A stretch of DNA of 64,000 bases from the IMG/VR virus record IMGVR_UViG_3300009537_002640, positions 1 to 64,000 of that record; one strand, given 5' to 3'. How positions within the stretch are numbered: position 1 is the stretch's first letter; every line of letters starts with the position of its first letter. Positions 1-56,330 of this stretch are shown one piece after another. Position numbers and translations under genes: made by a program. A model generated the notes under the pieces. That model saw nothing but the letters and a program-made list of their open reading frames with translations, did not search any database and was not told the DNA's origin.

Positions 1-1460
1 TCGTGAACCTTCCATGCAATATTGCCGGTTTCTGGAAACTCTTGGGTGTACCAAAACCCCCTATCATAAAGATTAGGGAAAGTTTCCCATAATGCGTCTG
101 CTGGACTAGTCACTCTATTTGGCATCATAAGAACTCGTCCAGAACGTAGGAATTTTATCTGCGGTTGTCCCAATATTGAGGCTGTGCTATTACCCGTATC
201 GCCCTGAGATACCCATTGTGGGCTCCCCGGATGCGGCACTCCATTATCATCTAATTCCATGTACCATATATTTCTACCACTATCATCCCATACATATAGC
301 CTATTGTATTGAAATCCTGATATTTGTTTATCATAAAATGCTATGTTTTCGTGAGACACTCCCTCATATGGTAGCTCGGGAAAGCTAGGGTCTAAAGGAT
401 CCTGAGTAATCCTCCACGAATCTTCTTGAATAAAATAAACACCCCAATCAGGTGTATTTAGGCTGGAGCTTACTGCACTAAACCCGCCTCTAGTTAAGTA
501 AATATGGTTCCCCCCATCCCAGCAAATAGCATTGGATTGATTAAGCCCATCATCTTCGCTACTTGTAAACATTTCGCTAACAATACGTATGGGCCACGTT
601 GGAATGTTAGCTATATCTTCCCAAGATTCAGTTAATAGATTTAAACGAGCAGTTTCAGTTCTGCTACCACCTATTGCAAGAAGGTAAGGAACTCTAGTTA
701 CTCGGTCTTCATAATAACACAAATACATTACCGGAGTAAATGGAGAGGTGGAATATGTTTTAGTCCTACTAATTGTACTAAGGCTATACTCTCCGCCGCC
801 TCTTCGCATATCATAACGCTCAACGGTATTAGCTGCTATTGATGAAACATAAACATTAGCCTTCCCGTCTGTATCATGGGGAAAAAATGTGGTAACAAAG
901 ATGCTGGAATTTGTGGGTCCACTATTCTGACGAGTAAAATGATTATTCTCCTCAGTGATAGTATGCAGAGTGTCAGATGTGGGTGAGCTTTCAGAAGTCC
1001 CATTAATCTCTAATTGGCCGCCGCCAGCCATATGATTTATTTGTAATATTTCATGATGCCACACTCGGTAATCATCACCACCAGACATATGCATAAATCT
1101 TGGTCCAAATTTCCCTATTTCTGAGTAACCAGCATAGGCATCACCATCCTTAGGAAAATATACATATGATTGTATTATAACATAGCCAGTATCGCCACGG
1201 TTATGGTCATCATAATCATAATAATCAGCCCCTCGCACGAATGGTTCAGGCGGAGCAACTCTTACGCGCGCAAATATCTCATTTCTCCCGGAACTGCCGA
1301 GAGAACGATAAACCATATCGTACCCGTCATAATCGCTGCCAGTTCCATAGCCGTCTATATTGCTCCATAATTGCCAGCCAGGAACATTATCGGCTATGAA
1401 ATTGTGCAATTCACGGGTAAGCTCAAATGTATTTGATACTGTTCCACGCTTGAACGCCAT
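1..1460 (-). CDS. Large putative virion/surface protein, 3' end beyond the window; possible Kelch-like beta-propeller segments
   Basis: Not in the ORF track because it has no stop in the window. Manual translation from ATG 1460 (GAGG upstream) stays open to base 1: MAFKRGTVSNTFELTRELHNFIADNVPGWQLWSNIDGYGTGSDYDGYDMVY... It includes Kelch-like stretches (TARLNLLTESWEDIANIP, NAICWDGGNHIYLTRGG) and follows the 3634 aa gene directly. Confidence 0.75.
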   Translation of the reverse strand, partial: MAFKRGTVSNTFELTRELHNFIADNVPGWQLWSNIDGYGTGSDYDGYDMVYRSLGSSGRNEIFARVRVAPPEPFVRGADYYDYDDHNRGDTGYVIIQSYVYFPKDGDAYAGYSEIGKFGPRFMHMSGGDDYRVWHHEILQINHMAGGGQLEINGTSESSPTSDTLHTITEENNHFTRQNSGPTNSSIFVTTFFPHDTDGKANVYVSSIAANTVERYDMRRGGGEYSLSTISRTKTYSTSPFTPVMYLCYYEDRVTRVPYLLAIGGSRTETARLNLLTESWEDIANIPTWPIRIVSEMFTSSEDDGLNQSNAICWDGGNHIYLTRGGFSAVSSSLNTPDWGVYFIQEDSWRITQDPLDPSFPELPYEGVSHENIAFYDKQISGFQYNRLYVWDDSGRNIWYMELDDNGVPHPGSPQWVSQGDTGNSTASILGQPQIKFLRSGRVLMMPNRVTSPADALWETFPNLYDRGFWYTQEFPETGNIAWKVH

Positions 1461-1489
1461 GTGTATAAACCTCAGTATACGCTAATTTA

Positions 1490-4400
1490 TTATAAGTTTT
1501 TGACTATCACGTCTCTTACATCGTTGCTTATCAGAGTGCCAGCTTCTTGTGAAGCAAACTGGAACCTAGTATTGCTTGGTAGATTGATGATAGTAACTCC
1601 GCCACCTAAGGAAGAGTCCTTAGTTGCCACAAATGCCTGCTGCTGTTGTAGGTTTACATCTACAGCAACAACCCTGTCCACTTGTCCGCCGAGTATTTCA
1701 AAAGTAGTACCGGATCCTTCTGTTCCATATGTGAGACTAATACCACCAGTTTCACTAGAGCCAGGAATTGATTCATCTGTATGTATGACAGTGAGGCCAT
1801 AATCTGTTGCTACATATATGGTATTAGAATAGTCATCTATAATTGAAGTGTTATTTGTAATCTTTATTTGATTAATGATACTATTGGATATTTCTGGCGT
1901 CGTAGTTACACTGTAATACGCATCCGGAACTGTGCTATCAACAGCGTCCAAATGTACATTATAGTACACTTCAACCCTACCTAAGGTATTGTTAGCCAGA
2001 TAAAGCACACTACCGCCGTCGTCCATATGAATTGAGCTTATATCACTCCCCAAGCTATAGTTTACTCCCGAAGCATTGTCTTTTATCAATGTAGCACCAG
2101 CCACTGTTGCCACTGCCAGAAATCCATTACTTGCGTTCGTTGCAGTAAACAAATCATTAACCTCATTGGAAGGTATAGATGGCGATGTTCCTTCGTTAAA
2201 TGCATCTTGTACTCTCTCAGAACTATCCCTGTGCAAATCGTTGAATGATAACCTGCGGACACCATAGGCATCTTCCACGTAACCATCGCTACGGCCAAAG
2301 TATATATCTTCTGTATCAGCAGTGATAGCGTTAAAACCATAACCGTCCAGCACGAACCCTACATTCTCAAGTTCAATTTTAGACACCACGTCTATACCAC
2401 CACTGGTAGCCAGGTACCAATTTGTATGGTCCTCATACATTCTGCGCACTGCGTTTCTACTCTTTACTCGTCCAGTGATTCCGGAAAGTGCAGCAGTAGT
2501 TGGCTTCATTGTAACTACTCCATGATTGTAATAAAGGTCAAACTTGTTACCGAAATAATCTCTTATCTCATCACTAGCCACAAATACATCAAAGGTTGAA
2601 CGACCATAAAGCCTATCTACAGTTAACACAACCCTGTCTAATTCTTTAGGATCTGCAGTGACGGCTTTTACTATCGCACCATCACTTATATGATAGTTAT
2701 TAGGATTAGTAAGATTTGAATCCTGGGTCATAGCCTCATTGAACACAACTGTTACATTGACATTGAATGGTTCATTTACGGCAGCCAGAACTCTTGGACC
2801 CACAATATCAGGGTATCCAGAAAAATCAACGGACTCGTATCCGTCGTCTATAGTAAAACCAAACTCATTAACAATACCCACTGAATCCACAGTTACAGTG
2901 TAAATGACCAGTGCTTGCATTGGAACGTTAAAAGTTAATTCAAATGTATCGTCATCCTGTTGCGCTACAGCAATTACATTGATAGGATAATCTCCACCAC
3001 TAATAGTATAAGCGCCGGGACTAAGTTCTGTTCCACCTATCACTGGAGGATCGCTGAATGTTAGATCCACTGTTTTGATAGAGGTTGCTTCAGCAAATTG
3101 TGGACGGAAGATGCGACGTTCAGCCATAAAGGAACCGCGATAGATGCTAACATCCACTGTGCCACCAGCTGCAATTTGTCGGTCAAATACAATTTCATCT
3201 GTAGTATAACCATCCACCACTGCGGCACCGGTTCCAGCTATAATGGCTAAATCCCCAGAGGTAAGCTGATTAGAATCGATAAAGAATTCACCTACATCAA
3301 TTGTATTAAATCCTGTCACTGCTCCAGATGCGGCATCTATAAAGCCTCCTTCCTTACCAATCTTATTTACTGCCACATTGCCTCTGTTATCTGCTGCAGT
3401 AATCCTGAAAGTAAACACCGCAAAACTTTCAGCCTGTTCATCCTTGTACATATCTATTACATAACCATCACCATCAGGCTGATTGCTTATAACTCCGCTC
3501 CAACCATTTTGAAACTCATCTACCGGCTCATATGATACCAGGAATGGTTCATCGGCATTATTGGATACCTCTATAAGCAGAGTGCTAAGGTTTACTTCCC
3601 CATCTCCTCTATCACGAATACCAAAACTTACATGCAAAGGCTCGCCCTCTGCATCTACAGAATTAGGCTCTGGATGAAAATCAAATACTAAGGGGCCTTC
3701 ATCATCAATTATTGAGAATGTATACTCGAAATGGGTCTGGTTGCTGGCATAATCGTAACCATCAACAACAACTCGTACTAAATAAGAAGGATCAAATATT
3801 ACTGAAGAATCTATTGTTATATCGTAACCATCCAAACGCTGGATAACTTGGCTATATGGTCCATCAAACCCTGAACCAACCACAAACTCACCCTCTTCCA
3901 TGACCAGAATATTATCAATAGTCAGATTAAATCTATCGAAATCAACCCCAGTCTCATCATCTACAATACGTATCTCTATGGTTGGACTACGAGCAACCCC
4001 TCCCTGGGTATCCACTGGGTCGATAGGAATAATGGTAGGCCCATTTACATCAACTTTGGTCAAGAAATCGTACACGAAATGTACATGATTATCAGCATAA
4101 TCATAACCATCTATTATTACGGTTTGCAGCTCATTGTAATCGAAGTTGACAAACTGATCCAACACAACCCTATACCCATCAACAATAGGCGTTATGCCTG
4201 ACTCAGGGTCAGACCATGGTGCCTTTATCTCACCATCTGTAACCGCTGGCACATCATTGACATAAACATCTAACCTGGTCATATCTACACCAGAAACAGA
4301 GTCGGTGATATCAAATGCTATGTCAGTATCTACCGGAACTTCCACTTCGCCTGGGAATGGATCTAGGTTGGTAATAGATGGTGCGTCTACATCTGCAATA

Positions 4401-7400
4401 GTTGCAAACCAATAAACATCATTAGTATGGTTGTCAGCAAAATCATACCCATCTACAGTTACTACAATAATCTGATTAAAATCAAACTCCTGCGTTCCCA
4501 CGGGATCTACAACAATGTGATAACCATCAAATATAGGCTCTATGCCTGCGGAAGAACCATCATATCCTGGTTGAAATACTCCATTAATTACAGCTGGAAT
4601 GCTATCGATGTGAACATCTAACCTGTCTAAATCGACACCAGCAACAGCGTCAGTTATGTCGAAGGAGACATCTGAATCGAGGGACACTTCTACTTCGAAA
4701 CTATCAGGGTTGCGATTACTTACTACAGGACCAGCAGTATCCGCTATCGTGTAAAAATAATACTCAAAATGCACATGATTGTCAGAAAAATCGTATCCAT
4801 CCACAACCACCGTAACTTGTTGATTGTAGAAAAAATCAAATTCTGGATCAATTTCTACATGATACCCATCCACTATTTGTTCAATGCCGCTAGAAGTATC
4901 ATTGTAGCCAGGTTGTAATAGGCCATCGATTATTGCCGGATTGTTATCGATATGAACATCAAGTCTGCTTATATCTACATCGTATCCATCAATAATGTCA
5001 AAGACGACGCTGCTGTTAAGAGCTATTTCAATGTCATTAGGCGCAGGAACTAGATTAACAATCTCTGGTTCTTCCTCATCAATAAATGTATGGAAGGCAA
5101 AATCAGTCAGCATGTAGTTGCCATATGCATCGTATCCATCTATCAGCACTCTGATGTCACTATCTAAAGCATATCTGCTGTCAGAAGATATATGAAAATT
5201 GTATCCATCATATCCGTCTACCCATGTTTGCTCTATTATTGCATCCCAGCCCCCTTGTGTCTCTCCTAACACAATAGCATTTCGGTCATCTATCTGAACA
5301 TTAACGGTACTTAGTTGTAATCCTGAGCCACCAGTATCGTGTATGTCGAACACTATGTCAGTAAATGGATTTACTTGTATAGACCCATCTACAGGTAGTT
5401 CATTGTCAAGAACCGGCGAAGTAAAGTCATCGGTAGAGAACTGATATGTATATATAGTCTGGTTGGGGTCTATATCGTAACCATCCAATATAACCACAAT
5501 ATTCCTGAATTCGGGGAGCGGATAATCTAAGTCAACAACAATATTGTAGCCATCCACTATAGGGGTAACATATATATCCGACTCTACACCTAACCCATCT
5601 TCAACTACCAAATTGCCATCTATCGTGATATTCAGTGTGTCTATATCTGGGCCAGAATGTACATCAATAAAATCAAATACTATGTCGGTGCTTGTATCTA
5701 CTCTAATCTCTCCAGAAGCAGGAATAAAGTTAGAGAATACAGGCGGAGTTTCGTCCAGTGTGTTGAAAAAGTAACTTATGTACCCATCGTTTCCAGCATT
5801 ATCTGTAGCAAACAGGTCAACATAAACCGATGTAAATTCGGCAAACGAAGGGGACTGCCCTCTATTATACGAGTTAGCTATCGATGATATAGTCCTTGGC
5901 CCATCACTGATACGCAAATCGTCTATCTTTCCATTAAACACATCTATTATGGTACCGGCGAAAGGACTTACACGTGCACCTATCAGCACACGAGCAGTAG
6001 CGGGAGATCCTGAGGCCCCATTAGAATATACTATCGAAGATATAGGAAATGTGCTTGTGGCTACCACTGCACCGTCTACCAATAACTTAACAAAATCATG
6101 GGTGCGGCTTACCACAGCTGCAATATGTGTATATGAACCAGTGGGGACTAATCCTGGTGCAGAGGTTACTGAACTGAATGATGCATTTCCATCACCCAAA
6201 TCTATAGCTAAAGCGCCAGTTGATGTTATTTTGAATACCACGCCTCTAGATTCTGCAACAGTTTGACGAGGATTGTAAGTGTATATTACATGATTTCCGG
6301 TTAAAGTCGTAGGATTAATCCATGCCTCTATGGCAAAGTCTTGCATTCTAAGTTCTGAATCTGCAGAGACATCAACTCTGTCATTTATACCATCAAAACT
6401 TAATGCATTGTCGAACATTCCTGGTACTAATGTAGCGCCTACTATTATTCCGTCTAAAGCAGAATTACCTGTAGCCTCTAGCACAGTTCCAGAAGTATCC
6501 ATTCTCCACAAAGCAACAGTATCACTATCTATATCATGTGGCAATGGACCAACACTTTCTATTACTACCCTATAGCCGTCATCTATTTCTATAAATTCAG
6601 TAACAAAGCCGGTGGGTTTGATCACACCAGAATCTACATAGCTGGTTCCATCTATTGTTATACCTATGCTGTCAAAATCTACACCTGAGTGCGGGTCTAG
6701 AATGTCTGCATAAATTGGGCCGGTACCAGTTATTTTGGCATCGGGGAATCTAGGCACCAATCTGTCGAATACAGGTCCAGTCTCATCTGCTGTTATCCAT
6801 GAGTACTCAAAAAATGCAAAGTTTCCATCGTTATCGCTACCGCTAAGAACAATATCAATTGCCTCATACTCAGGAAATCGTTCAGGCATAAACAACTGTA
6901 CATCATAACCATCCTTGGCGTTAGGTGTAATCTCTACTACATACCCATCAAGAGCATTGCCATCTATAACTACAAAAGAGCCAAGTATTCTGATATCCAG
7001 AGTATCCTTATTTGTTCCGGAACCACCAGTGTCATTAAATTCAAAGCGAATAGCAGTGTCAGTTGGCACATCTATGGCATCTGGAGCAGGATAAATATGC
7101 TCAAACACAGGGCCCTGGACATCTTCAGTTAAGAATGAAAAATCAAATTGCGCTGAGTTCCCAACACAGTCTTCACCATATAAGGAGACAGTTATAGTGG
7201 CATGATTAGGCCATCCATCATTTGGATATACTGTTACATGATAACCGTCACCATAAGCATCTCTGAAATACTCTGTGAAACCGCTGTAACCATCTTGGAA
7301 TTCACCGCCTATTATGGCTTGAGTAATTCCAAGAGTTACGTCCAAGGTGCTTAGGAACGCTCCAGAGCCTATATCTATAAAGTCAAAGGTTAGAGGTCTA

Positions 7401-10400: not shown

Positions 10401-12394
10401 AGAGAATTGAAATTACCTTGATTGTCGGCGCCGCTTATTTCTATTCCCAATACTGCAAATTCGGTCCAGCCACCATCTTTAATTAACCTTATGCGGTAGC
10501 CCTCATCTAGATGGTCAAAGTTTACTTCATAACCAGGTAGTGCGTAACCATCATTGACCACGAGCCAATCGTTTATACTGATATCTATCGAATATGCATC
10601 TGGTCTTGAATATCCATCTAGTGCATCTATTACTATTTGAGAAAACGGGTCTATTCTTTGAGAATCAGGTTCAGGGATAAATGGTTCAAAGACAGGCGGA
10701 GTTTGGTCAACAGTCTGGAATGAAAAAGTTCTCTGCCTTACTTCATTAACCCTGTTTGTAATTACAACCTCTACATCTACCTCGGTATATTCTGGGAGAG
10801 TAGGTTGCTGTATAACTACCCTATACCCATCCTCCAATTCAGTATACACAAGCGAATGGCCGTTAATAGCTACGCCATTAACAATTGCTGGGATGCCCTC
10901 AATAACAACCTGAAGTTCTTCTTTATCTACACCAAAAATAGCGTCAGCAAACTCAAAGCTTACATCGGTGGTTCTAGAGACTTCTATATATCCGTCCCCA
11001 GGATATTCATTTTGTACAACTGGGCCGCCGCCCATCTTTATGTAGAAGCTTTCAATAGTGGACGTACCATTATTATCTTCGCCATATAGATTAACATGGA
11101 AATTGCGTCCTTCTCTCCATCCACCGGTTTTATTTAATGTAACGTTGAATCCATCGAATCCGTTTGCAGTTATGGTTCCAAAGAATCCGGGCTGAATTAC
11201 CCCATCAACCACTACGTCGTCACCATCTATGTGTACTTGCAAGGTAGAAAGATTCGCTCCCGATATAAGATCGGGGCCCGTATCATAACCGTCATTGAAT
11301 TGGAAAAATATAGGATCATTGGCGCCGTGGCCAGCAGAAAAAGGCTGCGGGTCAAAGTTTACAAACTTAGGCGGAGGATCTACAGAGGAAGCTGTAGCAA
11401 AACTGTAAGTTAGGTATGCGAAAGAGCCATAAGCATCGGCAGCATCTAGCTCCATATTTATGACGGAACGCTCTGGCAATCCATTGAGAAATTCTATTGT
11501 TACCTGGTATCCATCATAACCATCCGAAAGACCCTCAGAAAATTCTTCATAAGTAACAAAATATCCATCTGTAGTGACTAACCCATTTTCAATTATAGGG
11601 AAGTCGTTCATACTAACATTTAAAGTACTCAGGTCTGGATTTTCATCCGAGTATATGAATACTACTGGGGTGCCTACTAGTACTTTAGTTTCCCCATCCA
11701 CAGGACTAACTGGGAAAAATACAGGCGGGAAAGCGTCATAGGGAGTATCGTAGATAAGCTCTTTTACTTCTTCTGGAAGTAAGGCGTAATTGTATATTCT
11801 AACGTCATCAATGTATCCATCAAATGAACTATCCCATGCACTTGATTCAGAATAGTTACCAATAATTAGAGGTGCGGTACTTATAAATACATCAGATATC
11901 CCGCTAACCGTATTGTCTATAGGGGCGCCATCAATGTACAAATTGTAATCTTGCCCACTACGAGTAACAGTTATAAGATGCCACTGACCATCATTTACAG
12001 CAGTTGAGCTAGATACTTGTGATACATTAGTTGAGCCATCTGAGCTGGCCGAGAAATCTATTAACCCACTGGAATCTAAAATTAGAGAAAAGCTATTGTT
12101 ATTGGTAGTATCATCTCTTTTGGTTATGATACCCTTGCTAGATGATAGTACAGTGGTTGTACTAACCCAGGCCGAAAGAGTAAACTCATTATTAGTGAAT
12201 TCAAATAAGTCCAAATCTCCTATTTCAACTCTATCTTCAGACCCTGGAAAAAATACACGAGCATTACCAAGAACCCCAGGCTCTATAGCAGTGCCGGTGA
12301 CGTTACCATTGTTCTCATTGGAGGTGCTGTCATTCGCAATGGAGCCTGATGTTTCGTCAAATTTCCAGTGTCCTATAATTCGTTGATCTGTCAT
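1490..12394 (-). CDS. Giant (3634 aa) acidic putative virion/surface protein: N-terminal LamG domain, ~22 tandem Ig-like repeats, an internal LamG, C-terminal beta-rich domain
   Basis: LamG motifs (HWKFDE, WHLITVT, FDGYIDDVRIYNYAL; second copy FNGKIDDLRISD). About 22 units start with P-x-F/I-x4-P and run ~110-120 aa each. No signal peptide is evident. Confidence 0.8.
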   Translation of the reverse strand: MTDQRIIGHWKFDETSGSIANDSTSNENNGNVTGTAIEPGVLGNARVFFPGSEDRVEIGDLDLFEFTNNEFTLSAWVSTTTVLSSSKGIITKRDDTTNNNSFSLILDSSGLIDFSASSDGSTNVSQVSSSTAVNDGQWHLITVTRSGQDYNLYIDGAPIDNTVSGISDVFISTAPLIIGNYSESSAWDSSFDGYIDDVRIYNYALLPEEVKELIYDTPYDAFPPVFFPVSPVDGETKVLVGTPVVFIYSDENPDLSTLNVSMNDFPIIENGLVTTDGYFVTYEEFSEGLSDGYDGYQVTIEFLNGLPERSVINMELDAADAYGSFAYLTYSFATASSVDPPPKFVNFDPQPFSAGHGANDPIFFQFNDGYDTGPDLISGANLSTLQVHIDGDDVVVDGVIQPGFFGTITANGFDGFNVTLNKTGGWREGRNFHVNLYGEDNNGTSTIESFYIKMGGGPVVQNEYPGDGYIEVSRTTDVSFEFADAIFGVDKEELQVVIEGIPAIVNGVAINGHSLVYTELEDGYRVVIQQPTLPEYTEVDVEVVITNRVNEVRQRTFSFQTVDQTPPVFEPFIPEPDSQRIDPFSQIVIDALDGYSRPDAYSIDISINDWLVVNDGYALPGYEVNFDHLDEGYRIRLIKDGGWTEFAVLGIEISGADNQGNFNSLFYYVSVDDISGPVITNRVPDDNEKAFAAADVTFQVHDSGGVGVIPDLLNVTIDGTPAIIDGTFQAGFTGSINLSIVEGFDGYSITIDPDDDFTLGTFVDVFVSTKDGYGNESTAAYTFEVADEVAPVITNLDPDDGETSSLRPYIRFGIHDSGGTGVDPIRLQMTVDGVPAIIDGEIAPHFAGLIDPTSVNGFDGYNVFVRWDDYFVPGSEHFVIIDGYDAVGNFSQLAYSFFTTIDTTPAIFDDFSPEPGETGVPFDTAVTFSFNDADGYIGNSNLFTLNITIDGNQAVENGFGVNGYNIVFSENGSDGYDIEVFLPSSLPEFYEVIVELDGYDSSDNFTSFQYSFRTADVTPPLIETVYPNPGDTGISPLTDVIFILLDGYSGVDLDTVNVTVDNEPAIINGELQDGYDANITPVVDGYQIELVGSNFAEGKTALVGVELQDIEGNLRSFAYSFDVADVTGPDFDSILPEPFDINVPNHINLSFDFIDYTSGADLNTLGVTANGVPLVTNGSPEPGIQLETSVIDSGYFVEVKELVFVEGEEIEIVLDGYDNSGNYTSISYLLTGAYIPPLFSNFSPVPFEISVPVDTDIEFDFTDAYGVNLDDLEILINGAPAVISGQPLDGYVVTYAPITDGYRVTLELEEPLSEFYNVVVELFGRDNNGIEGTFDYTFKTVSAFPPDFLFVTPPPFSVDQSEEENISFTIDDPADNGIFFDSIYVYLNFQPVILAGIAQDGYSVEISPNEDGYNIIIEHPPFEPYSMVFVSIEAITFDGNPGLFEYYYDVGKHGPPQVIPIDPLEGELDVPTDTDVVFEVRDINGVDLNGLTVDIDGIPAFRDGSFLFPFDDINSDIEEITDDEFRHFPDLVPVYIPVGTFYPPVPFHEVVYIDTDDDFDGYIDGYVDVDGYIDGYFVPDGYQLDGYFDDGYDGYISIQNVGYRFTFDRRTDFKLSSVVTVQVHAADLEGNEGDRTYAFSIVDDTGPPIFANVDPFPDEEDVELDRPLTFDFIDIGSGAFLSTLDVTLGITQAIIGGEFQDGYSGFTEYFRDAYGDGYHVTVYPNDGWPNHATITVSLYGEDCVGNSAQFDFSFLTEDVQGPVFEHIYPAPDAIDVPTDTAIRFEFNDTGGSGTNKDTLDIRILGSFVVIDGNALDGYVVEITPNAKDGYDVQLFMPERFPEYEAIDIVLSGSDNDGNFAFFEYSWITADETGPVFDRLVPRFPDAKITGTGPIYADILDPHSGVDFDSIGITIDGTSYVDSGVIKPTGFVTEFIEIDDGYRVVIESVGPLPHDIDSDTVALWRMDTSGTVLEATGNSALDGIIVGATLVPGMFDNALSFDGINDRVDVSADSELRMQDFAIEAWINPTTLTGNHVIYTYNPRQTVAESRGVVFKITSTGALAIDLGDGNASFSSVTSAPGLVPTGSYTHIAAVVSRTHDFVKLLVDGAVVATSTFPISSIVYSNGASGSPATARVLIGARVSPFAGTIIDVFNGKIDDLRISDGPRTISSIANSYNRGQSPSFAEFTSVYVDLFATDNAGNDGYISYFFNTLDETPPVFSNFIPASGEIRVDTSTDIVFDFIDVHSGPDIDTLNITIDGNLVVEDGLGVESDIYVTPIVDGYNIVVDLDYPLPEFRNIVVILDGYDIDPNQTIYTYQFSTDDFTSPVLDNELPVDGSIQVNPFTDIVFDIHDTGGSGLQLSTVNVQIDDRNAIVLGETQGGWDAIIEQTWVDGYDGYNFHISSDSRYALDSDIRVLIDGYDAYGNYMLTDFAFHTFIDEEEPEIVNLVPAPNDIEIALNSSVVFDIIDGYDVDISRLDVHIDNNPAIIDGLLQPGYNDTSSGIEQIVDGYHVEIDPEFDFFYNQQVTVVVDGYDFSDNHVHFEYYFYTIADTAGPVVSNRNPDSFEVEVSLDSDVSFDITDAVAGVDLDRLDVHIDSIPAVINGVFQPGYDGSSAGIEPIFDGYHIVVDPVGTQEFDFNQIIVVTVDGYDFADNHTNDVYWFATIADVDAPSITNLDPFPGEVEVPVDTDIAFDITDSVSGVDMTRLDVYVNDVPAVTDGEIKAPWSDPESGITPIVDGYRVVLDQFVNFDYNELQTVIIDGYDYADNHVHFVYDFLTKVDVNGPTIIPIDPVDTQGGVARSPTIEIRIVDDETGVDFDRFNLTIDNILVMEEGEFVVGSGFDGPYSQVIQRLDGYDITIDSSVIFDPSYLVRVVVDGYDYASNQTHFEYTFSIIDDEGPLVFDFHPEPNSVDAEGEPLHVSFGIRDRGDGEVNLSTLLIEVSNNADEPFLVSYEPVDEFQNGWSGVISNQPDGDGYVIDMYKDEQAESFAVFTFRITAADNRGNVAVNKIGKEGGFIDAASGAVTGFNTIDVGEFFIDSNQLTSGDLAIIAGTGAAVVDGYTTDEIVFDRQIAAGGTVDVSIYRGSFMAERRIFRPQFAEATSIKTVDLTFSDPPVIGGTELSPGAYTISGGDYPINVIAVAQQDDDTFELTFNVPMQALVIYTVTVDSVGIVNEFGFTIDDGYESVDFSGYPDIVGPRVLAAVNEPFNVNVTVVFNEAMTQDSNLTNPNNYHISDGAIVKAVTADPKELDRVVLTVDRLYGRSTFDVFVASDEIRDYFGNKFDLYYNHGVVTMKPTTAALSGITGRVKSRNAVRRMYEDHTNWYLATSGGIDVVSKIELENVGFVLDGYGFNAITADTEDIYFGRSDGYVEDAYGVRRLSFNDLHRDSSERVQDAFNEGTSPSIPSNEVNDLFTATNASNGFLAVATVAGATLIKDNASGVNYSLGSDISSIHMDDGGSVLYLANNTLGRVEVYYNVHLDAVDSTVPDAYYSVTTTPEISNSIINQIKITNNTSIIDDYSNTIYVATDYGLTVIHTDESIPGSSETGGISLTYGTEGSGTTFEILGGQVDRVVAVDVNLQQQQAFVATKDSSLGGGVTIINLPSNTRFQFASQEAGTLISNDVRDVIVKNL
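7611..7720 (-). repeat. Intragenic tandem array encoding 8 DGY tripeptides (DFDGYIDGYVDVDGYIDGYFVPDGYQLDGYFDDGYDGY)
   Basis: Visible in the translation. An exact 20-bp DNA repeat tatccatctatgtatccgtc occurs at 7668-7687 and 7698-7717. Confidence 0.9.
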
Positions 12395-12396
12395 AG

Positions 12397-12897
12397 TTAA
12401 CCTACGTGGATAACATTATATCCGTATGCATCCAATATGAATCCCTCATTCATTAGTGATACTTTATTTACCACATCAACCCCTGATTCGGTTTTTATGT
12501 ACCATCTATCTTCATCTTCTTCTATCTCGATAACTGATGTGCCTGATTTTAGTCTACCATTTCCAACTGCTATAGATTGTACAGTATCAGATACATTAGG
12601 GCGGTAAGCTAGTGAAAAGGCATACGAGTTGTTGTTTGGATCTACCTCTTCTCCATTAAATGCTCTAACATTAGAGTCTACGGTAACAACAAAAGAATCA
12701 AATTCAAACAAATTTTCTACCGTTAATCTTACCTGTTTTTCATCTATTTGCGTCACTGATGTGGTAAAAGCACCATGAGTAAATGTGTAATTATCCGGGT
12801 CTATCAATTGATCATCAGATAGCATAACAGTATCAAAATGAACCTCTACGGTTACTGGCCATGGGCGATTGATAGCATTAATAACTTTTGGTCCCAT
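12397..12897 (-). CDS. 166 aa protein paralogous to a C-terminal segment of the giant protein (Ig-like plus beta-rich module)
   Basis: GPKVINAINRPW...EDEDRWYIKTESGVDVVNKVSLMNEGFILDAYGYNVI aligns by eye with GPRVLAAVNEPF...EDHTNWYLATSGGIDVVSKIELENVGFVLDGYGFNAI in the 3634 aa protein. Confidence 0.8.
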   Translation of the reverse strand: MGPKVINAINRPWPVTVEVHFDTVMLSDDQLIDPDNYTFTHGAFTTSVTQIDEKQVRLTVENLFEFDSFVVTVDSNVRAFNGEEVDPNNNSYAFSLAYRPNVSDTVQSIAVGNGRLKSGTSVIEIEEDEDRWYIKTESGVDVVNKVSLMNEGFILDAYGYNVIHVG

Positions 12898-15800
12898 TAT
12901 CGTTTCAACCTTGCCCCTTTGTATCTTTCGAATATCTCAGTAGAAGTACGAACAGAATTAGATACTCTTACGGCCCCTATAGAGCCATCAAAATATTCAT
13001 CCGTTGACGGCCAATATATCCCCATATACACATCAGCTGTACTAACATGGTTGCCCGTCATAAGCGAATTTTCTGTTTGTCCCAATTGTCGACCGTCAAG
13101 ATACAACGCTAATCTTTTGTCGGCAAAACTATACGTAAACGCTACATAGTGCCAAGCCCCAGCAGTAATTGTACCTAAAGTCAATTGAACGCTTTCTCCT
13201 ACATTATCCATAACTTCTGCAGCAAGATAGCCGTCTGAGCCAACACCTAGAGAAAAGCCTGCACCACCTACTTCTATGCGATTTAGCAATCTTCCATTAT
13301 GCAATGTATCAGCTTGAAACCAACATTCTACAGATAGGTCTTCGTGATCCCATTCAGAGTTAGCAGGTATAACTACGTAATCAGCTGTACCATCAAAAAT
13401 ACGGGCTTTCTCGCCGCTGGAAGAAACACTCAACAGTGGTTCACTTCTTGGAGAGCCGCCATGAATTTCGTTAAACAAATAGCCGTCGCGCTCATCATTG
13501 TTAAAACCCCTCACCTGCATATTATTCCATTCATAATCAAATGTTCCAGTGGTTGCATATTCGGCACGAAGGACATTTCCTATCTGAATCCAACAATCAT
13601 CTTCGGGTCCGGTTGCCTGCCCTAATAATGTTGTTGGTTCAGCCCCATTTATCCCGTAATATGTTCTCCACTTATTACCTTCTCTAGTAAAACGTGTGCT
13701 TATTGAACTAGGAACTACAGCTCCAAATTCAGTAGTGCTAATCGTACTGTACAGATAAGAATATATCCTATTTCTGTTGTTTGATCCATCAAACCATTCA
13801 TCATATACAATGTAAACTGCTACGCCCGATGCTGTTCGCATTCTAACTTCGGACCTATCGGTGCTGCTAGTTGCCCACGGTTGAGGTCTGCTTGGCAAGC
13901 TAGGCATATCTATTCTGAAATCAAAATTCCCAGTGACTCTTAATCCTCCCCGAGAATCTATGAAGACCTGAGAATAGTCTCCGCCTATGTGGTCATTTCT
14001 CAGAACTATATTGCCCCCGGATACAAAAACATCGTTGGAGCCATTTCCTAATAAAGAATCGCCTACTGCTGGGAAAAAACGACGAAAATCATCTGTATCG
14101 GCATAACTAGCCAAAGCGTTGTACGCTAATGGAATAGAGCGATTACTGGTCATTATTTGTCGTCCAGGATCTTCACTAAAATCCCAAATAACCATTGTGT
14201 GTTCGTCTTCTACAAACCCAATCTTGGGGTCATCTGCTGCATGATAAGTATTGTATATTTCCCATGGGGCCCGCACTACATTAGAGAAACGAATGTCGGC
14301 TATATCACCATCGAAATAAAATGTTGCAGATGAGCCTCGACGACCTACAGCGAATGAATTTGTAGTATTGGCGGTTATGCCTGCCGAAATAGTATCTACC
14401 AATTCGCCATCTAAATACCCAGAGAGGTTAGAACCATCGTGAGTCATAGCAAAATGATACCACCTATTGGTCAAAATCTGAGGGCCAGTGAGTGTAAAGC
14501 CAGAACCGTTAGCAGAATTGTACCTTATGTTCATATTTGCGTCGAGGTCGACCCCCCATCCATTAGAATTGTATGCCTCTTTGGAAACTATGTACTGATA
14601 ATCACCAGTAACGCTATGAGCCCTAAACCACCCCTCAATAGTAAATGGAGAACCAATATCAAATGCCGCATCGTCACTATACATATATCCCTGACTACCA
14701 TCAAATCTTGCGCAATGAGTAAAGGGCACTTCGTTATCATCTGCTAGTGCAAGATTACACCCAAGACGAGCCCGTAGGTCTAATGCAGAATTGCCCTTAA
14801 CATTAGTTCCTATTCGTTCTATGAATGGATTTGCTTCCATCAGTCTGAACGTATCAAACTCTGCAGATATAAAAGATGCACCAGTAAATGCGTTGCCAAG
14901 ATATAACGCAGTGCCACTAGTTGTTGTTGCCCAAGTCTGTTCCGTCAACTGATCATTTATGTATAGCTCAATATAATGACTACTAGTATTGCCAGGATCT
15001 AACTCATAACCCCTAACCTCTATTTCGGTCCAATCTTTGGTAAAATCAATTCCGTTCGGGAGTCCAAAGCTTATGGAGCCCTGATCATTAATAATAGTAA
15101 AAGTGTCAACTCCACCATAAACACGCCATCTAGTTCCATCTATAACACTATAGAGAATAGTGTGATTGCTTGCTGTAGGAGTGAAGGGGTTTACGTCTTC
15201 GTCCCTATGTCTAAATTTAATAGTAAAGCCATTAGAAAATTGAGGTACGTAACTAGAGTCATTGGAGCGCCACATGCGGCTATAACTCGATGTAACATTG
15301 AAATTATAGTAGGTCATAGTACCCTTAAATTCCGGTCTCAATGTTTCGCTACTTGAATCTCCAGTGAAATTACTAGGTGGATCATGAACATCACCACCAA
15401 TTGTACTGAAATCAAAATTAAGCTTTGGTGCAGAGCCAGTTGTTTGAGATTCTGCCCGAATTGTTTTATTCATAGGCCACAATGCTACAGTGTTCGCATC
15501 TACTTGCAATCTGCGACCAGAACGAGTAACTACAGGCTGGAGTGCTTGGGCAGCCTGAACGAGTGTAACAGTCACCTCGGGAGAATCAGGACTAGCCTGA
15601 GAAACAGATACGGCTCTAATTTTTGTCCCGGGCTCTTGATTAGAAAAAGGTATACTCATTGAGAATTGTCCATTCTCAGCCGCTATGGTGTACCCATCGG
15701 CAATCAGCCCCTCATCCGTATGTAATTCTGTATGAACGCCATTTAGTGGGGGTACTCTACCCTTGATGCTTACAACGCTAAAAACCTTATCACCGCTGTT

Positions 15801-17939
15801 AGGGTATTCATAATGTACTGGTATAGTAGTAAAATGCCACACATTGCCTGTCGTTCGTCCGCCATAACCAACAGTATCAATTCTCCAGTAATAAGTAGTC
15901 CCCGGATCAAGAGTAGGTAAAACAAAACTCAGCTCGGTTTGTGCACTTTGATAAGTACCCATAAGAATATCACTGGTTACCCCATCCTCATCTTTTCCAA
16001 AATACACCTCATAAGTATTGGCATCTACAGCCGCTCCCCAAGTTATAGACTTGCCTTCAAGCTCTACAAAAGTTGCGCCATTTTCTGGGGTAGGGCTATT
16101 AGGTTGCCCTGGAGGCGGAAGGAACACAACCGTGGTAAAGCTCCACACATCTCCAGTAGTAGTCCCACCTTCGCTAACCTCGTCGATTCTCCAATAATAA
16201 GTAGTGTTGAGTTCAAGAATACCTGGTTCATATGTTGTAGTAGCCTGATTACCTTTAAATGTACCGCCAGTACCATTAGTTACGTCGGTTTGATTGGTTC
16301 CAAAGTACACGTCACTGGTTAATGTGCCCTCACCAGTTACATCCCAACTCAAATCATCGGTAAGAAATATATCAGTGGCGCCATTAGACGGACTTGGGTT
16401 AGATGCCTGATCTGGAGGCGGCACAAATTCCTGGGTACTCATCACCAACAACATCATTTGCCTTAGATCATTTCCAGAAGTAGAAGGAGAGGTAGAATAT
16501 AGCTCCCAGGATTGTTCTACATTTGGAGTTTCACCAGTGAGCAATTCAAATATCCATGGACCAACTACGGAGCCGTCAGTGCCAGTGTAGTTAGAGTTGT
16601 CACCATGCCATTGAACAGCATATGATTGAGAATCCCATATCTTGGTTCCATCTCTGGTAACATCACCAGCAATACCTCTGCTAGTTGTGCTAAAACTTCC
16701 GTCACCTTCAGATTGCACAGAGCCAAATACTATAACTTCGCCTGTGGAGTCTGGAGTAAAACTAAGAGTAGAGCCGCGTTGGGTCCTATTAGTGTTAGCG
16801 GGTGGTGTAGAACCCTCATCAATATCGAAATATGTGAAATTAGCAAATGAATTTAGGCGTATAACAATAATTCTAGCTTCGTCTTTTTCGGCTGCTGAAA
16901 ATGAACGATATTCCGTAACAAGGGTAATTGGAGATGCTGGGGGAGCTGTCTTAATTCCCCATCCGGTATAGCAGTGTTCTTCGTTTCCTAAGTTACCGGT
17001 ACCGATACCTGATTGAAACACTGTGGTTGAGTTAGTAACGTCGCGAAGACGCATAATCATATTACCAGGTATGTTGTCAAAAGCCGCCACGCCTATACAC
17101 AAATAATCAGATGTACCGTCTGGAGTAAAGGTTAGTACTGCAGGATTCCAATCAGCAAATACCCAGGAAGAATTAGCTACTGTGTCAGATAGGTTTATTT
17201 TTTGGGACGCCCCGCTATTTGGTCTCACTAATGTATAGCTGGTACTTCCTTGTGTGCTAGCAAAAACGTTAAGTGGAGATGCTCCATTGATAGCATTAAT
17301 AATAGCCGTTCGTACAGTGCTAGAAGAATCCCCTGGATTCAGAGTAACAGCAATATTGCCAGGAGTTACCCCATCGCCACTAATATCGAATTCGAATGTC
17401 TGGACATTGCCTTCTGTGTCATCGATAGTAAATGTTTCACCATCAACTAGTGTAGACGCCGCCTGATTTTCAATTACAGCAGATGGTTGACTAAATGAAT
17501 GATGAACATGCTGTGAACGAGATGAATCGACAACGTGAAACCAGTCTTCATTCTCGACAAGTCCTGCAGAGTCTAGGTCTATAGCCATTAGTGAGCAGTT
17601 ACGAGCAACACCATTGTTTGAATTGCTGCGCTGAACTGTTAGAGTAATATCTTGCCCAGCTACAGCAGTCCACAATGTACAGCCTTTGTACTGGTGCACA
17701 TTGCTTCCGCCACCAGGAGAAGAATAATCACCACGGATATTATTGTCAGGAGATCCGCCGAAATTCAACCTACAGAATGCACCATGAGAGCCACCTAAGG
17801 TGTGAATAGTGCCAAAAACAAGATACCGGTGCCCTGCAACCAGTTCGGTGTTGCTGATAGTGCATACGGTTAATTCTGTAGAGCTTACAGAAAGCTGGGT
17901 GGTGTGATACGCCTTATCAAATAATACTGTAACAGCCAT
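12897..17939 (-). CDS. 1680 aa putative virion/receptor-binding protein with two FnIII-like repeats and several LamG (concanavalin-like) domains
   Basis: Two repeats ending TYYWRID...G.VW[SH]FTT. LamG motifs RWYHFAMTHDG...FDGDIADIRFSN and AWHYVAFTYS...FDGSIGAVRVSN. Confidence 0.75.
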   Translation of the reverse strand: MAVTVLFDKAYHTTQLSVSSTELTVCTISNTELVAGHRYLVFGTIHTLGGSHGAFCRLNFGGSPDNNIRGDYSSPGGGSNVHQYKGCTLWTAVAGQDITLTVQRSNSNNGVARNCSLMAIDLDSAGLVENEDWFHVVDSSRSQHVHHSFSQPSAVIENQAASTLVDGETFTIDDTEGNVQTFEFDISGDGVTPGNIAVTLNPGDSSSTVRTAIINAINGASPLNVFASTQGSTSYTLVRPNSGASQKINLSDTVANSSWVFADWNPAVLTFTPDGTSDYLCIGVAAFDNIPGNMIMRLRDVTNSTTVFQSGIGTGNLGNEEHCYTGWGIKTAPPASPITLVTEYRSFSAAEKDEARIIVIRLNSFANFTYFDIDEGSTPPANTNRTQRGSTLSFTPDSTGEVIVFGSVQSEGDGSFSTTSRGIAGDVTRDGTKIWDSQSYAVQWHGDNSNYTGTDGSVVGPWIFELLTGETPNVEQSWELYSTSPSTSGNDLRQMMLLVMSTQEFVPPPDQASNPSPSNGATDIFLTDDLSWDVTGEGTLTSDVYFGTNQTDVTNGTGGTFKGNQATTTYEPGILELNTTYYWRIDEVSEGGTTTGDVWSFTTVVFLPPPGQPNSPTPENGATFVELEGKSITWGAAVDANTYEVYFGKDEDGVTSDILMGTYQSAQTELSFVLPTLDPGTTYYWRIDTVGYGGRTTGNVWHFTTIPVHYEYPNSGDKVFSVVSIKGRVPPLNGVHTELHTDEGLIADGYTIAAENGQFSMSIPFSNQEPGTKIRAVSVSQASPDSPEVTVTLVQAAQALQPVVTRSGRRLQVDANTVALWPMNKTIRAESQTTGSAPKLNFDFSTIGGDVHDPPSNFTGDSSSETLRPEFKGTMTYYNFNVTSSYSRMWRSNDSSYVPQFSNGFTIKFRHRDEDVNPFTPTASNHTILYSVIDGTRWRVYGGVDTFTIINDQGSISFGLPNGIDFTKDWTEIEVRGYELDPGNTSSHYIELYINDQLTEQTWATTTSGTALYLGNAFTGASFISAEFDTFRLMEANPFIERIGTNVKGNSALDLRARLGCNLALADDNEVPFTHCARFDGSQGYMYSDDAAFDIGSPFTIEGWFRAHSVTGDYQYIVSKEAYNSNGWGVDLDANMNIRYNSANGSGFTLTGPQILTNRWYHFAMTHDGSNLSGYLDGELVDTISAGITANTTNSFAVGRRGSSATFYFDGDIADIRFSNVVRAPWEIYNTYHAADDPKIGFVEDEHTMVIWDFSEDPGRQIMTSNRSIPLAYNALASYADTDDFRRFFPAVGDSLLGNGSNDVFVSGGNIVLRNDHIGGDYSQVFIDSRGGLRVTGNFDFRIDMPSLPSRPQPWATSSTDRSEVRMRTASGVAVYIVYDEWFDGSNNRNRIYSYLYSTISTTEFGAVVPSSISTRFTREGNKWRTYYGINGAEPTTLLGQATGPEDDCWIQIGNVLRAEYATTGTFDYEWNNMQVRGFNNDERDGYLFNEIHGGSPRSEPLLSVSSSGEKARIFDGTADYVVIPANSEWDHEDLSVECWFQADTLHNGRLLNRIEVGGAGFSLGVGSDGYLAAEVMDNVGESVQLTLGTITAGAWHYVAFTYSFADKRLALYLDGRQLGQTENSLMTGNHVSTADVYMGIYWPSTDEYFDGSIGAVRVSNSVRTSTEIFERYKGARLKR

Positions 17940-41801: not shown

Positions 41802-41802
41802 T

Positions 41803-43888: not shown

Positions 43889-43891
43889 TAC

Positions 43892-44125: not shown

Positions 44126-44126
44126 T

Positions 44127-45376: not shown

Positions 45377-45383
45377 CTAAACC

Positions 45384-45683: not shown

Positions 45684-45720
45684 ACTACCAGTATGACGGC
45701 TATCAATATAAGCTTTGTTA

Positions 45721-54144: not shown

Positions 54145-54175
54145 TTCTTCTCCGGTTTCAGGGAAACCTTATTCA

Positions 54176-56328: not shown

Positions 56329-56330
56329 CT

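Follow-up and report, generated by a model that had tools for sequence, protein, structure and literature searches.

The tripeptide Asp-Gly-Tyr (DGY) is about 18 times more common than chance in the tail, sheath, baseplate and fibre proteins of a jumbo phage, and it is similarly over-represented in uncultivated relatives of this phage, whatever the fold of the protein that carries it. Together, the results below strongly support selection on the tripeptide itself. The motif may be a tag read by a phage enzyme, possibly for attaching sugars to tyrosine, although this function is inferred from sequence and model data alone. The starting point was a window of 64,000 nucleotides (positions 1 to 64,000 of IMG/VR record IMGVR_UViG_3300009537_002640), for which an initial annotation had reported about 55 DGY in a 3634-aa protein, usually 2-4 per Ig repeat at loop or turn positions, together with further copies in two neighbouring genes. 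That observation is confirmed, and the effect proved to be much larger than first described.

The 3634-aa protein (hereafter B; 1490..12394, minus strand) contains 57 DGY, whereas its composition predicts 1.75. Comparison with shuffled sequences had been named beforehand as a test, and 2000 residue shuffles gave a mean of 1.7 and a maximum of 8; a first-order Markov expectation is 18.7. B, which has Pfam matches to Laminin_G_3 and Big_5, comprises an N-terminal Laminin_G_3 domain, 22 Ig-like repeats and a C-terminal non-repeat region, the usual build of a long adhesive appendage, and its orthologues of 3610-3678 aa keep 51-61 DGY. The Laminin_G_3 (ConA-like) domain (11762..12244, minus strand; residues 51-211; PF13385, E=8.3e-47) has a single DGY at residue 192, and D192, G193 and Y194 are invariant in 10 orthologues. 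The 22 tandem repeats (3362..11725, minus strand; residues 224-3011), delimited with an iterated HMM, are Big_5-like and about 108-118 aa long. They carry 52 of the 57 DGY and gave Foldseek matches to tandem Ig domains. A second Laminin_G_3-like domain is inserted into repeat 15 (5855..6532, minus strand; residues about 1955-2180), since two of the HMM hits (16 and 17) are halves of one repeat split by the insert and Pfam reports two Laminin_G_3 stretches. The C-terminal non-repeat part (1490..3361, minus strand; residues 3012-3634) has 4 DGY.

As first described, the motif also occurs in the flanking genes. The downstream ORF (3..1460, minus strand), of at least 486 aa and running off the contig start, has DGY at residues 36 and 45 and gave no family match. 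The 1680-aa protein (12897..17939, minus strand), which has two Laminin_G_3 stretches, has three DGY, at residues 748, 1485 and 1569, against 0.46 expected. Between this gene and B lies a 166-aa ORF (12397..12897, minus strand) that is paralogous to residues 3198-3357 of B (BLASTP, 37% identity, E=6e-27) and has DAY where B has DGY.

Two details of the original description needed correction. Ordinary Ig-like repeats carry 1-3 DGY (mean about 2) rather than 2-4; repeat 12 carries 8 because of a poly-DGY insertion (7610..7717, minus strand; residues 1560-1595). Nor are all sites loops or turns. In an AF2 model of repeats 18-19 (4382..5068, minus strand; residues 2443-2671; pLDDT 95.7), analysed with DSSP, the predicted DGY sites lie in a loop, at a hairpin turn and strand start, and, for one recurrent site, inside strand F.

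We next considered whether the pattern could be an artefact of repeat descent or of amino-acid composition, given that B is built of 22 homologous repeats rich in Asp (11.3%) and Gly. Within the repeats DGY occupies at least 13 different columns, with 10 further sites outside the repeat alignment, 5 of them in the poly-DGY insertion of repeat 12. The motif is written with 12 codon combinations, and there is no DNA tandem repeat in 1-18 kb. Beyond B, the genome holds 102 further DGY against 12.2 expected, and DGY is the most over-represented tripeptide of the whole 206-kb genome (159 against 13.7, z=39, with the next tripeptide at z=7). Collapsing the 159 sites to independent contexts still gives 109 against 13.7 expected (P about 1e-58), and 63 against 11 outside the two giant proteins, while the composition-matched permutations YGD, GDY, DYG and YDG have observed/expected ratios of about 1. 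These controls, and recurrence of the signal in ten other viral records, refute the artefact explanation.

The signal is in the protein and is essentially confined to the tail, baseplate, sheath and fibre blocks. The DNA pattern GAYGGNTAY occurs 159 times in frame, but only 4 times in the other frames and 6 times antisense. In the structural half of the genome observed/expected is 17.8, or 11.0 without the two giant proteins, compared with 0.4 in the replication and glycan half. The major capsid protein has no DGY, the head block (180-206 kb) has only 2, and the block at 108-126 kb, which holds a second sheath homologue, has none. However, DGY and DAY are not significantly depleted from non-structural proteins (7 against 13.3, P about 0.05, with control tripeptides similarly low). 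The motif is also self-contained: positions from 8 residues before it to 8 after it carry no information, and the 159 sites fall into 109 flank clusters, 91 of them singletons. It is chemically specific for the Asp carboxylate and the Tyr hydroxyl, since DGF (0.6), DGW (0.4), NGY (0.6) and EGY (0.5) are not enriched, and only DAY is (4.0).

Comparison of orthologues of B (48-82% identical) showed that 452 of 513 cells keep exact DGY. D, G and Y are 96, 94 and 92% conserved, respectively, against 55% overall and 67% for Trp; Y to F occurs 2-3 times and D to E never. The sites are thus held far more tightly than any other residue class. The poly-DGY insertion of repeat 12 is indel-rich among orthologues, yet essentially only the DGY units are kept. 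At repeat column 121, in the solvent phase of strand F, Tyr is 0.96 conserved where DGY exists, whereas the equivalent residue in the 13 repeats without DGY is 0.34 conserved and may be E, A, Q, R, S or T. In more distant orthologues the positions turn over while the enrichment persists: G000 and G001 orthologues (G numbers denote the genomes compared) carry 15 and 23 DGY with 6 shared, and changes such as TGT to DGY occur by point substitution in alignable context. At least ten IMG/VR records, five of them with a 73-86% identical capsid protein, show the enrichment, with coding-strand counts against a reversed-pattern control of 105 against 12-16, 83 against 17, 93 against 12-16, 81 against 23-31, 90 against 10-14, and others. 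In contrast, Bacillus phage G, the nearest cultured relative, has only a weak excess.

The interpretation offered in the initial annotation, that the tripeptide itself is selected and may serve Tyr O-glycosylation, Ca2+ binding or isoaspartate chemistry, is therefore partly supported: its central inference holds and extends genome-wide and clade-wide, but the proposed functions fare differently. Ca2+ binding by DGY is not supported, as there is no DxDxDG-like flank and the motif sits in different backbone contexts. Isoaspartate chemistry is not excluded but is disfavoured: Asp-Gly is the Asp sequence most prone to isomerisation, and Asp and Tyr are strictly required, but NGY, the more reactive analogue, is not enriched. 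Other chemistry on the motif, such as Tyr sulfation or phosphorylation, or Tyr-based cross-linking that hardens the tail after assembly, is likewise improbable. A sulfotransferase was found only in G006 and not across the clade, and no conserved enzyme for these reactions was found among the genes scanned; the PrkA-type kinase belongs to a conserved PrkA/DUF444/SpoVR trio that also occurs in cellular genomes.

Tyr O-glycosylation remains possible. The phage has a glycan-biosynthesis region of about 56 kb that starts within the window (38730..64000, minus strand) and runs on to genome coordinate 94945. The part in the window encodes RmlA/B/D-like proteins, UDP-glucose dehydrogenase, epimerases, GT4 proteins, TagF-like transferases and two NeuB; beyond it lie a third NeuB, two CMP-transferases, PseB/PseC-like genes, GlmS, a pyruvyl transferase, GT2 genes and a clade-conserved GT4 at 93740-94945. 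Orthologues of this GT4 are present in the DGY-rich relatives G001, G002, G006 and G007 but absent from the complete phage G genome, which has only a weak DGY excess, and the gene abuts the DGY block in G000, G002 and G007. This association rests on one clade, which amounts to one evolutionary event. NeuB is not conserved in relatives, and the glycan genes could instead serve DNA hypermodification or alteration of the host surface, possibilities for which there is published work. A complex prediction of the GT4 with the poly-DGY loop gave no answer.

Taken together, our analysis strongly supports the view that DGY (strictly D-[G, rarely A]-Y) is a short linear motif under direct selection in the external tail apparatus (fibres, baseplate proteins, one sheath homologue and the giant Ig-repeat appendage protein) of a clade of uncultivated jumbo phages related to Bacillus phage G; it is enriched at protein level, independent of fold and flanks, chemically specific, tightly held among close orthologues and subject to turnover by point substitution among distant ones while density is kept. 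From these properties we infer, but have not shown, that the motif is read as a linear sequence by some other factor. Our preferred but tentative reading (probability roughly 0.35) is that this reader is a phage-encoded modifying enzyme, making DGY a sequon. The best candidate reaction would be direct cytoplasmic O-glycosylation of the Tyr by the clade-conserved GT4, helped by neighbouring GT2s and fed by the phage's own sugar-nucleotide genes, which would result in a glycan coat on the tail and fibres. There is no direct evidence of any modification. Furthermore, the commonest DGY column of the Ig repeat (18 of 22 repeats) puts the Tyr in phase with the core residues of its strand, so that these Tyr may be inaccessible after folding and may be conserved for structural reasons.

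Indeed, a versatile structural staple is nearly as likely. In this view Asp-Gly makes a tight turn or helix stop (an Asx-turn or type I' turn, or a Schellman-like C-cap) and the following Tyr anchors the next element, in the manner of a tyrosine corner or of the beta-layer at coiled-coil ends in trimeric fibres; the clade would reuse this unit wherever a chain reverses, and module shuffling among fibre genes would spread it. Consistent with this, the main Ig-repeat site sits at a hairpin turn. In the 3811-aa fibre, DGY follows hydrophobic positions at -8, -5 and -1, a heptad pattern, and coincides with 9 of 11 helix breaks in a low-confidence model. Some contexts are reused modules (flank clusters of 17, 7, 5 and 5 sites), and the head and replication proteins, which lack DGY, are not fibrous. 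However, the motif adopts different backbone states in one high-confidence model, NGY, which favours type I' turns at least as well, is not enriched, nor are DGF and DGW, and the replacement of Gly by Ala in DAY argues against a need for positive phi. The fixation of DGY at column 121, where the fold tolerates other residues, and the turnover of sites at alignable positions also speak against this view. Homologous fibre modules in other phages (P0023-P0026) have no DGY, and poly-DGY loops have no obvious fold.

Two further readings appear less likely. Each exposed Asp-Tyr pair might bind weakly to a host surface polymer, through sugar stacking on Tyr and hydrogen bonds to Asp, or to a metal ion shared between chains of trimeric fibres, with many copies giving avidity for adsorption. 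The restriction to the outer tail and fibre apparatus, the need for both carboxylate and hydroxyl, the maintenance of density despite turnover and the lectin-like Laminin_G domains in the same proteins would fit this unlikely possibility, but a three-residue site in varied backbone geometries cannot form one defined pocket, no extra acidic residues are conserved nearby for metal binding, and many Tyr face the domain core. Alternatively, and more doubtfully still, DGY might be a recognition tag for a phage-specific chaperone that binds unfolded fibre and tail chains, since it behaves as a linear, conformation-independent signal confined to proteins that must oligomerise into fibres and baseplate. 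No chaperone with such specificity is known, however, no candidate gene was identified, and this idea explains poly-DGY loops no better than a sequon does.

Several known systems resemble parts of this picture. B shares its architecture with giant Ig-repeat adhesins and phage Ig-like decoration proteins (Big_5/BIg repeats, Hoc-like), but no DGY enrichment is described for these families, and a distant homologue, P0015 (28% identity), keeps only 20. The tyrosine corner of Greek-key beta-sandwich (Ig and FN3) domains also places a highly conserved Tyr, for which Phe is a poor substitute, next to a Gly-containing turn at the edge of the sandwich, which fits the main DGY column. Classical corners, however, have Tyr 3-5 residues after the bonded backbone position (LxPGxY, DxGxYxC) rather than a contiguous DGY, and do not explain the sites inside strands, in loops, after coiled coils or in poly-DGY inserts. 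Beta-layers and helix-stop motifs of trimeric phage fibres are three-residue non-helical elements that end coiled-coil segments, such as AGYI at the transition from coiled coil to foldon in T4 fibritin (PMC4786415), and in the 3811-aa fibre DGY directly follows a heptad pattern; but beta-layer sequences are diverse (KAD, TKD and others) with no DGY consensus, and the element needs a trimer and does not apply to Ig-repeat sites.

Among glycosylation systems, the tyrosine-linked S-layer glycans of Paenibacillus alvei and Thermoanaerobacter (PMC2943079) are O-linked to Tyr on repetitive surface proteins of Firmicutes, and are built from rhamnose, ManNAc and glycerol-phosphate, for which this phage encodes Rml, 2-epimerase-like and TagF-like genes. 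They are, however, built on a lipid carrier and transferred outside the membrane by a Wzy_C-type O-oligosaccharyltransferase, none of which was found in five phage records; only 2-4 sites per S-layer protein are known, and no DGY sequon has been reported. In mycobacteriophages, phage-encoded glycosyltransferases modify virion proteins in the cytoplasm (Freeman et al. 2023, as summarised in PMC12619734), but there the glycans sit at the C-termini of capsid and tail-tube subunits, whereas here the capsid protein has no DGY and the motif is spread through tail and fibre proteins. Finally, in comparison with established sequons (eukaryotic and bacterial N-X-S/T, and the D-[S/T]-[A/I/L/V/M/T] O-glycosylation motif of Bacteroidota), the hydroxyl residue here would be Tyr at position 3, no transferase or glycan has been demonstrated, and, since the target proteins assemble in the cytoplasm, transfer would have to be direct from a nucleotide sugar. 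Like those sequons, DGY is a three-residue linear motif, independent of fold, that is kept in a defined class of surface proteins and whose positions turn over while density is kept; the Bacteroidota motif also begins with Asp.

The window is the first 64 kb of a 206,495-bp virus record; almost all its genes lie on the minus strand, and the gene content is that of a jumbo myovirus. It includes PhoH, ribonucleotide reductase, a sigma factor, DnaB-like and UvsW-like helicases, two sheath homologues, a baseplate wedge protein and a major head protein. A DisA-type diadenylate cyclase domain protein, a YpsA/SLOG protein and the full PrkA/DUF444/SpoVR trio are encoded at window 24420-30719 (minus strand), and a TubZ/tubulin-like GTPase at 37295-38728 (minus strand); the trio is conserved at 49-56% identity, and the GTPase at 52%, in G001, a 302-kb IMG/VR relative. 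By capsid protein the nearest cultured phage is Bacillus phage G, at 53.5% identity, and most structural proteins match no PHROG family. We found no close relative in the INPHARED phage collection by DNA, and only a weak sheath match by protein; a pattern-based search of IMG/VR with the sheath likewise found none, and one with the giant Ig-repeat protein found only Laminin_G matches. The 'moraphage' lineage (PMC12619734) was considered as an identity for this clade but not adopted, since it is placed near T4 and Lak phages, whereas this capsid protein is closest to phage G. CheckV gives a completeness of 25% for the record, and relatives reach 302-361 kb, so the genome may be incomplete; the ORF at window 3-1460 runs off the contig start and does not continue sensibly across the ends.

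The giant 3634-aa ORF (window 1490-12394, minus strand) contains 57 DGY against 1.75 expected from composition. Shuffled sequences never exceeded 8, and a first-order Markov model expects 18.7. Of 65 Gly-Tyr dipeptides 57 are preceded by Asp, of 94 Asp-Gly dipeptides 57 are followed by Tyr, and one third of all Tyr in the protein sit in DGY. The downstream ORF carries two DGY and the 1680-aa protein three, as the initial annotation had counted, and its observation of a pervasive DGY motif in this cluster is confirmed. The giant protein consists of an N-terminal Laminin_G_3 domain, 22 Ig-like repeats (residues 224-3011) and a non-repeat C-terminal region, with a poly-DGY insertion in repeat 12 (the repeat with its insertion spans window 7454-8029, minus strand). 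A second Laminin_G-like domain (window 5855-6532, minus strand) is inserted inside repeat 15, splitting it into two halves that the repeat HMM finds separately. The match to Pfam Big_5 (PF13205) is above the cut-off for the whole protein (E=8.8e-12), although no single stretch passes alone, and it was a self-built HMM that found the 22 repeats. Laminin_G_3 (PF13385) is matched above the cut-off both here (E=8.3e-47, two stretches) and in the 1680-aa protein (3e-38). The 166-aa ORF between the two large genes (window 12397-12897, minus strand) is a paralogue of residues 3198-3357 of the giant protein (window 2324-2803, minus strand; 37% identity, E=6e-27) and has DAY where the giant protein has DGY.

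Repeat descent or composition might be expected to generate such a pattern, but as a whole explanation this was rejected by the shuffles and the Markov expectation, and by permutation controls, codon diversity and flank clustering. Ordinary repeats hold one to three DGY, and these occupy at least 13 different columns of the repeat alignment. The four recurrent ones are column 96 (18 repeats), column 121 (9), column 79 (6) and column 38 (3), and ten further sites lie outside the alignment, five of them in the poly-DGY insertion of repeat 12. The tripeptide is spelt with 12 different codon combinations, in proportion to codon usage, and Tandem Repeats Finder detected no DNA repeat in 1-18 kb. 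In contrast, one relative (G010) contains perfect DNA tandem arrays encoding (DGY)6 and (DGY)5 (G010:C1:71333-71386 and 72749-72793), each with a single codon spelling; these are recent expansions, unlike the codon-diverse sites elsewhere.

DGY is the most over-represented tripeptide of the whole predicted proteome (159 against 13.7, z=39), with the next unrelated tripeptide at z about 7. Without the 3634-aa protein it is 102 against 12.3, and without both that protein and a second giant (3811 aa, 33 DGY) it is 69 against 11. This second giant (genome 148296-159731; positions 5296-16731, minus strand, of the genome stretch L006) is built of helical repeats of about 27-30 aa, each ending in L-DGY-A/S, plus five copies of a G-A-DGY-V-A-F-F-T module, and has a weak match to the endosialidase stalk region. 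A DNA-level signal was rejected, because the pattern GAYGGNTAY occurs 159 times in frame 0 of the ORFs but only 4 times in other frames and 6 times antisense; the signal is therefore in the protein. It is confined to three blocks, 1-18 kb, 95-108 kb and 126-180 kb, which hold the Ig-repeat protein and its neighbours, baseplate proteins, fibre-like proteins and one sheath homologue (7 DGY). The replication and glycan half (18-94 kb, about 25,000 aa) has 2, the block 108-126 kb, which holds the second sheath homologue, has none, and the head block 180-206 kb has 2, with none in the capsid protein itself. A promiscuous enzyme might cause depletion of DGY and DAY from non-structural proteins, but such depletion was not significant.

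The enrichment is chemically specific. In the structural half the observed/expected ratio is 17.8 for DGY, but 0.6 for DGF, 0.4 for DGW, 0.6 for NGY, 0.5 for EGY, 0.6 for SGY and 0.9-1.4 for the permutations YGD, GDY, DYG and YDG. GYD is raised only through DGYD, and DAY, at 4.0, is the only enriched variant. The motif therefore needs a carboxylate, a very small middle residue and a phenol. It does not appear to be part of a longer motif: for the 69 sites outside the two giant proteins, no position from 8 residues before DGY to 8 after it carries more than about 0.5 bit (relative entropy 0.2-0.5 bits at every flank position). Since acidic residues are not enriched in the flanks, the Asp or Asn at positions -4 and -2 of a DxDxDG-type calcium-binding loop are lacking, and calcium binding by DGY itself, one of the possibilities raised by the initial annotation, is not supported. 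The 159 sites fall into 109 clusters of flank similarity, 91 of them singletons, and counting clusters only, the excess remains at P about 1e-58. Hydrophobic periodicity differs by protein, with a strand pattern after the Tyr in the Ig-repeat protein, a heptad-like pattern (-8, -5, -1) before the Asp in the 3811-aa fibre, and no pattern elsewhere.

To relate the motif to the fold, we examined an AF2 model of repeats 18-19 (window 4382-5068, minus strand; pLDDT 95.7), which shows two all-beta sandwiches with 8 strands per repeat. Foldseek searches of PDB and BFVD returned only generic tandem-Ig matches, with probability 1.0 to the tandem Ig domains of titin and LdtMt2. By DSSP the column-38 DGY is in the loop after strand B, the column-96 DGY spans a hairpin turn and the first strand residues, and the column-121 DGY lies inside strand F. 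Judged from hydrophobicity profiles alone, the column-96 Tyr is in phase with core residues, whereas the column-121 Asp and Tyr, and the loop sites, are in the solvent phase. These data bear on the main alternative to a linear signal, namely that DGY is a versatile structural staple. Such a staple explains the hairpin site and the coiled-coil ends, and has precedent in tyrosine corners and in the beta-layers of trimeric coiled-coil fibres, such as AGYI of T4 fibritin. A tyrosine corner has a Tyr at a strand end of a Greek-key sandwich with its OH bonded to the backbone 3-5 residues earlier; the column-96 site fits this in its position, whereas the other DGY sites do not fit. A beta-layer has three residues in beta conformation interrupting a heptad register in a trimer. 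For the 3811-aa fibre the evidence is limited to the heptad-like pattern, as the AF2 model of residues 130-460 (pLDDT 37.8) was unusable beyond helix propensity. However, a staple does not explain the lack of NGY and DGF enrichment, the strand-internal and loop sites, or the turnover described below.

Nine orthologues of the Ig-repeat protein, 48-82% identical and 3610-3678 aa long, keep 51-61 DGY. Of 513 cells at the query's DGY sites, 452 keep the exact tripeptide. The D, G and Y of DGY are 96, 94 and 92% conserved, compared with 62, 74 and 62% for other D, G and Y, 67% for Trp and 55% for all other residues. The commonest replacement is DAY (11); Y to F occurs 2-3 times and D to E never. 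Conservation is tied to the motif and not to the fold position. At column 121 the Tyr is 0.96 conserved in the 9 repeats with DGY, but the equivalent residue (E, A, T, K, Q, R, S and others) is 0.34 conserved in the other 13 repeats; the corresponding values are 1.00 and 0.63 at column 79, and 0.95 and 0.67 at column 96. The poly-DGY insertion is full of indels, with essentially only DGY units aligned, and one orthologue has gained further DGY-rich insertions.

We next looked among more distant relatives. A DNA pattern for three consecutive DGY found 45 IMG/VR stretches, about 30 of them in frame in long ORFs. Whole-record counts of the nine-base pattern on the coding strand, compared with a reversed-pattern control, were 105 against 12-16 in G001 (302 kb), 83 against 16-17 in G002 (219 kb), 93 against 12-16 in G006 (318 kb), 81 against 23-31 in G007 (361 kb), 57 against 5-6 in G008 (208 kb) and 90 against 10-14 in G009 (161 kb), and four smaller records give similar ratios. 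Phage G, in contrast, shows only 52 against 19 in 497 kb, without dense blocks. G001, G002, G007, G009 and G010 carry a capsid protein 73-86% identical to this one; G008 has only a short 47% match, G006 has none, and G003-G005 are 40-kb fragments that do not contain the gene. At least five of these records therefore form one clade with this phage. In relatives the capsid gene matches in two to four separated pieces with stops between them (G001:C1:187659-192111, G002:C1:33897-36377 and G007:C1:103152-105352), which suggests introns, inteins or homing-endonuclease insertions. In the 312-kb JGI relative (L010:1-4767) the ribonucleotide reductase carries an intein (Intein_splicing, Hint, LAGLIDADG), and a Cas12f1-like TnpB gene sits between it and PhoH.

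The complete G001 record has 100 DGY against 16.3 expected, although it lacks a full-length orthologue of the Ig-repeat protein (its best match is a 1125-aa protein, 27% identical over 486 residues). In nine orthologous pairs between this genome and G001 (33-57% identity) there are 15 and 23 DGY with only 6 shared, and the differences are point substitutions in alignable context, for example T-G-T, N-R-T or L-G-E opposite D-G-Y. Density is kept while positions move. Homologues of the 3811-aa fibre at 27-41% identity also have DGY as their commonest tripeptide (16-42 each), whereas four that share only another module have none.

A linear motif of this kind might be read by a phage-encoded enzyme. 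About 56 kb, a quarter of the record (window 38730-64000, continuing to genome coordinate 94945), encodes sugar-nucleotide and glycan synthesis, namely RmlA/B/D-like genes, UDP-glucose dehydrogenase, GlmS, PseB/PseC-like genes, three NeuB paralogues, two CMP-transferases, a pyruvyl transferase, three or four TagF-like transferases and many GT2 and GT4 genes. At window 48604-50243 (minus strand) a LAGLIDADG-type homing endonuclease ORF overlaps the start of a short GT4-like ORF, so that this glycosyltransferase gene may be split or invaded by a mobile element. The last gene of the region, a 401-aa GT4 (genome 93740-94945), directly precedes the first DGY-bearing tail gene, and its neighbouring GT2 genes lie at 86.3-93.5 kb. 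It has orthologues (31-35% identity, E 1e-51 to 1e-84) in the DGY-rich relatives G001, G002, G006 and G007, and none in phage G, although this co-distribution rests on a single clade. In G002 and G007 it again lies within a few hundred bases of the DGY-rich block, and in G001 and G006 it is fused to a second GT4 domain. A PDB sequence search with the GT4 gave only weak matches, to BshA and to the adhesin O-GlcNAc transferase Gtf1, limited to the shared nucleotide-binding half, and a complex prediction with the poly-DGY loop gave no answer, which is neither support nor evidence against. Other candidate enzymes (NeuB, a sulfotransferase, a Maf-like protein and a Wzy_C oligosaccharyltransferase) are not conserved across the clade. 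Wzy_C (PF04932), which would be required for en bloc transfer as in S-layer-type tyrosine O-glycosylation, has no match in this genome, G001, G002, G006 or G007, although the control matched in 10 of 14 genomes. Tyrosine sulfation is similarly not supported, since PF13469 is over the cut-off only in G006, with no match in this genome, G002 or G007 and one sub-threshold match (E=0.0065) in G001.

Taken together, the sequence data establish that a linear, chemically specific tripeptide, kept independently of fold and flanks, is under selection in the outer tail apparatus of one phage clade; what it does, including any modification of the Tyr and any role of the GT4, is inferred. The interpretation offered by the initial annotation is thus partly supported, in that selection acts on the tripeptide while Tyr glycosylation remains a hypothesis. 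We tentatively favour a modification sequon (probability about 0.35), with Tyr O-glycosylation by the conserved GT4 the likeliest reaction. This would account for the independence from fold and backbone, the strict need for the hydroxyl and the carboxylate, the tolerance of Ala, the positional turnover with kept density, the poly-DGY loops and the gene neighbourhood. Its weak points are the core-facing Tyr of the commonest Ig column, the single-clade nature of the association, and other possible uses of the glycan genes, such as DNA hypermodification or host-surface change. The structural staple is nearly as likely. Ligand binding is unlikely, and other chemistry on the motif or a chaperone tag less likely still, but each remains possible.

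A three-residue motif enriched 11- to 18-fold across unrelated tail and fibre proteins, and held more tightly than tryptophan, was not found in full-text literature searches, and those for a DGY motif in phages and for Tyr glycosylation of phages returned nothing relevant. If it is a sequon, it would show how a phage spends a quarter of its genome on sugar metabolism, provide a tyrosine-directed glycosyltransferase with a minimal tag that could be used in protein engineering, and offer a way to predict glycosylated virion surfaces from sequence. If it is structural, it is a compact turn-plus-anchor unit that works in beta-sandwiches, coiled-coil ends and loops, which is of interest for protein design. 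Either way, the motif is a simple sequence marker for a clade of uncultivated phages, with records of 135-361 kb, related to phage G. In its fullest form, which we regard as doubtful although the chance is substantial, DGY would be the sequon of a phage-encoded, cytoplasmic, tyrosine-directed system that coats the tail, baseplate and fibres of a whole clade of jumbo phages. There are parallels in three-residue glycosylation sequons, in the Tyr-linked S-layer glycans of Firmicutes (PMC2943079) and in the cytoplasmic virion glycosylation of mycobacteriophages (as cited in PMC12619734); relative to these, what would be new is a tyrosine sequon, the first of its type, and a phage tail glycosylation code, the first general code for virion glycosylation in a phage.
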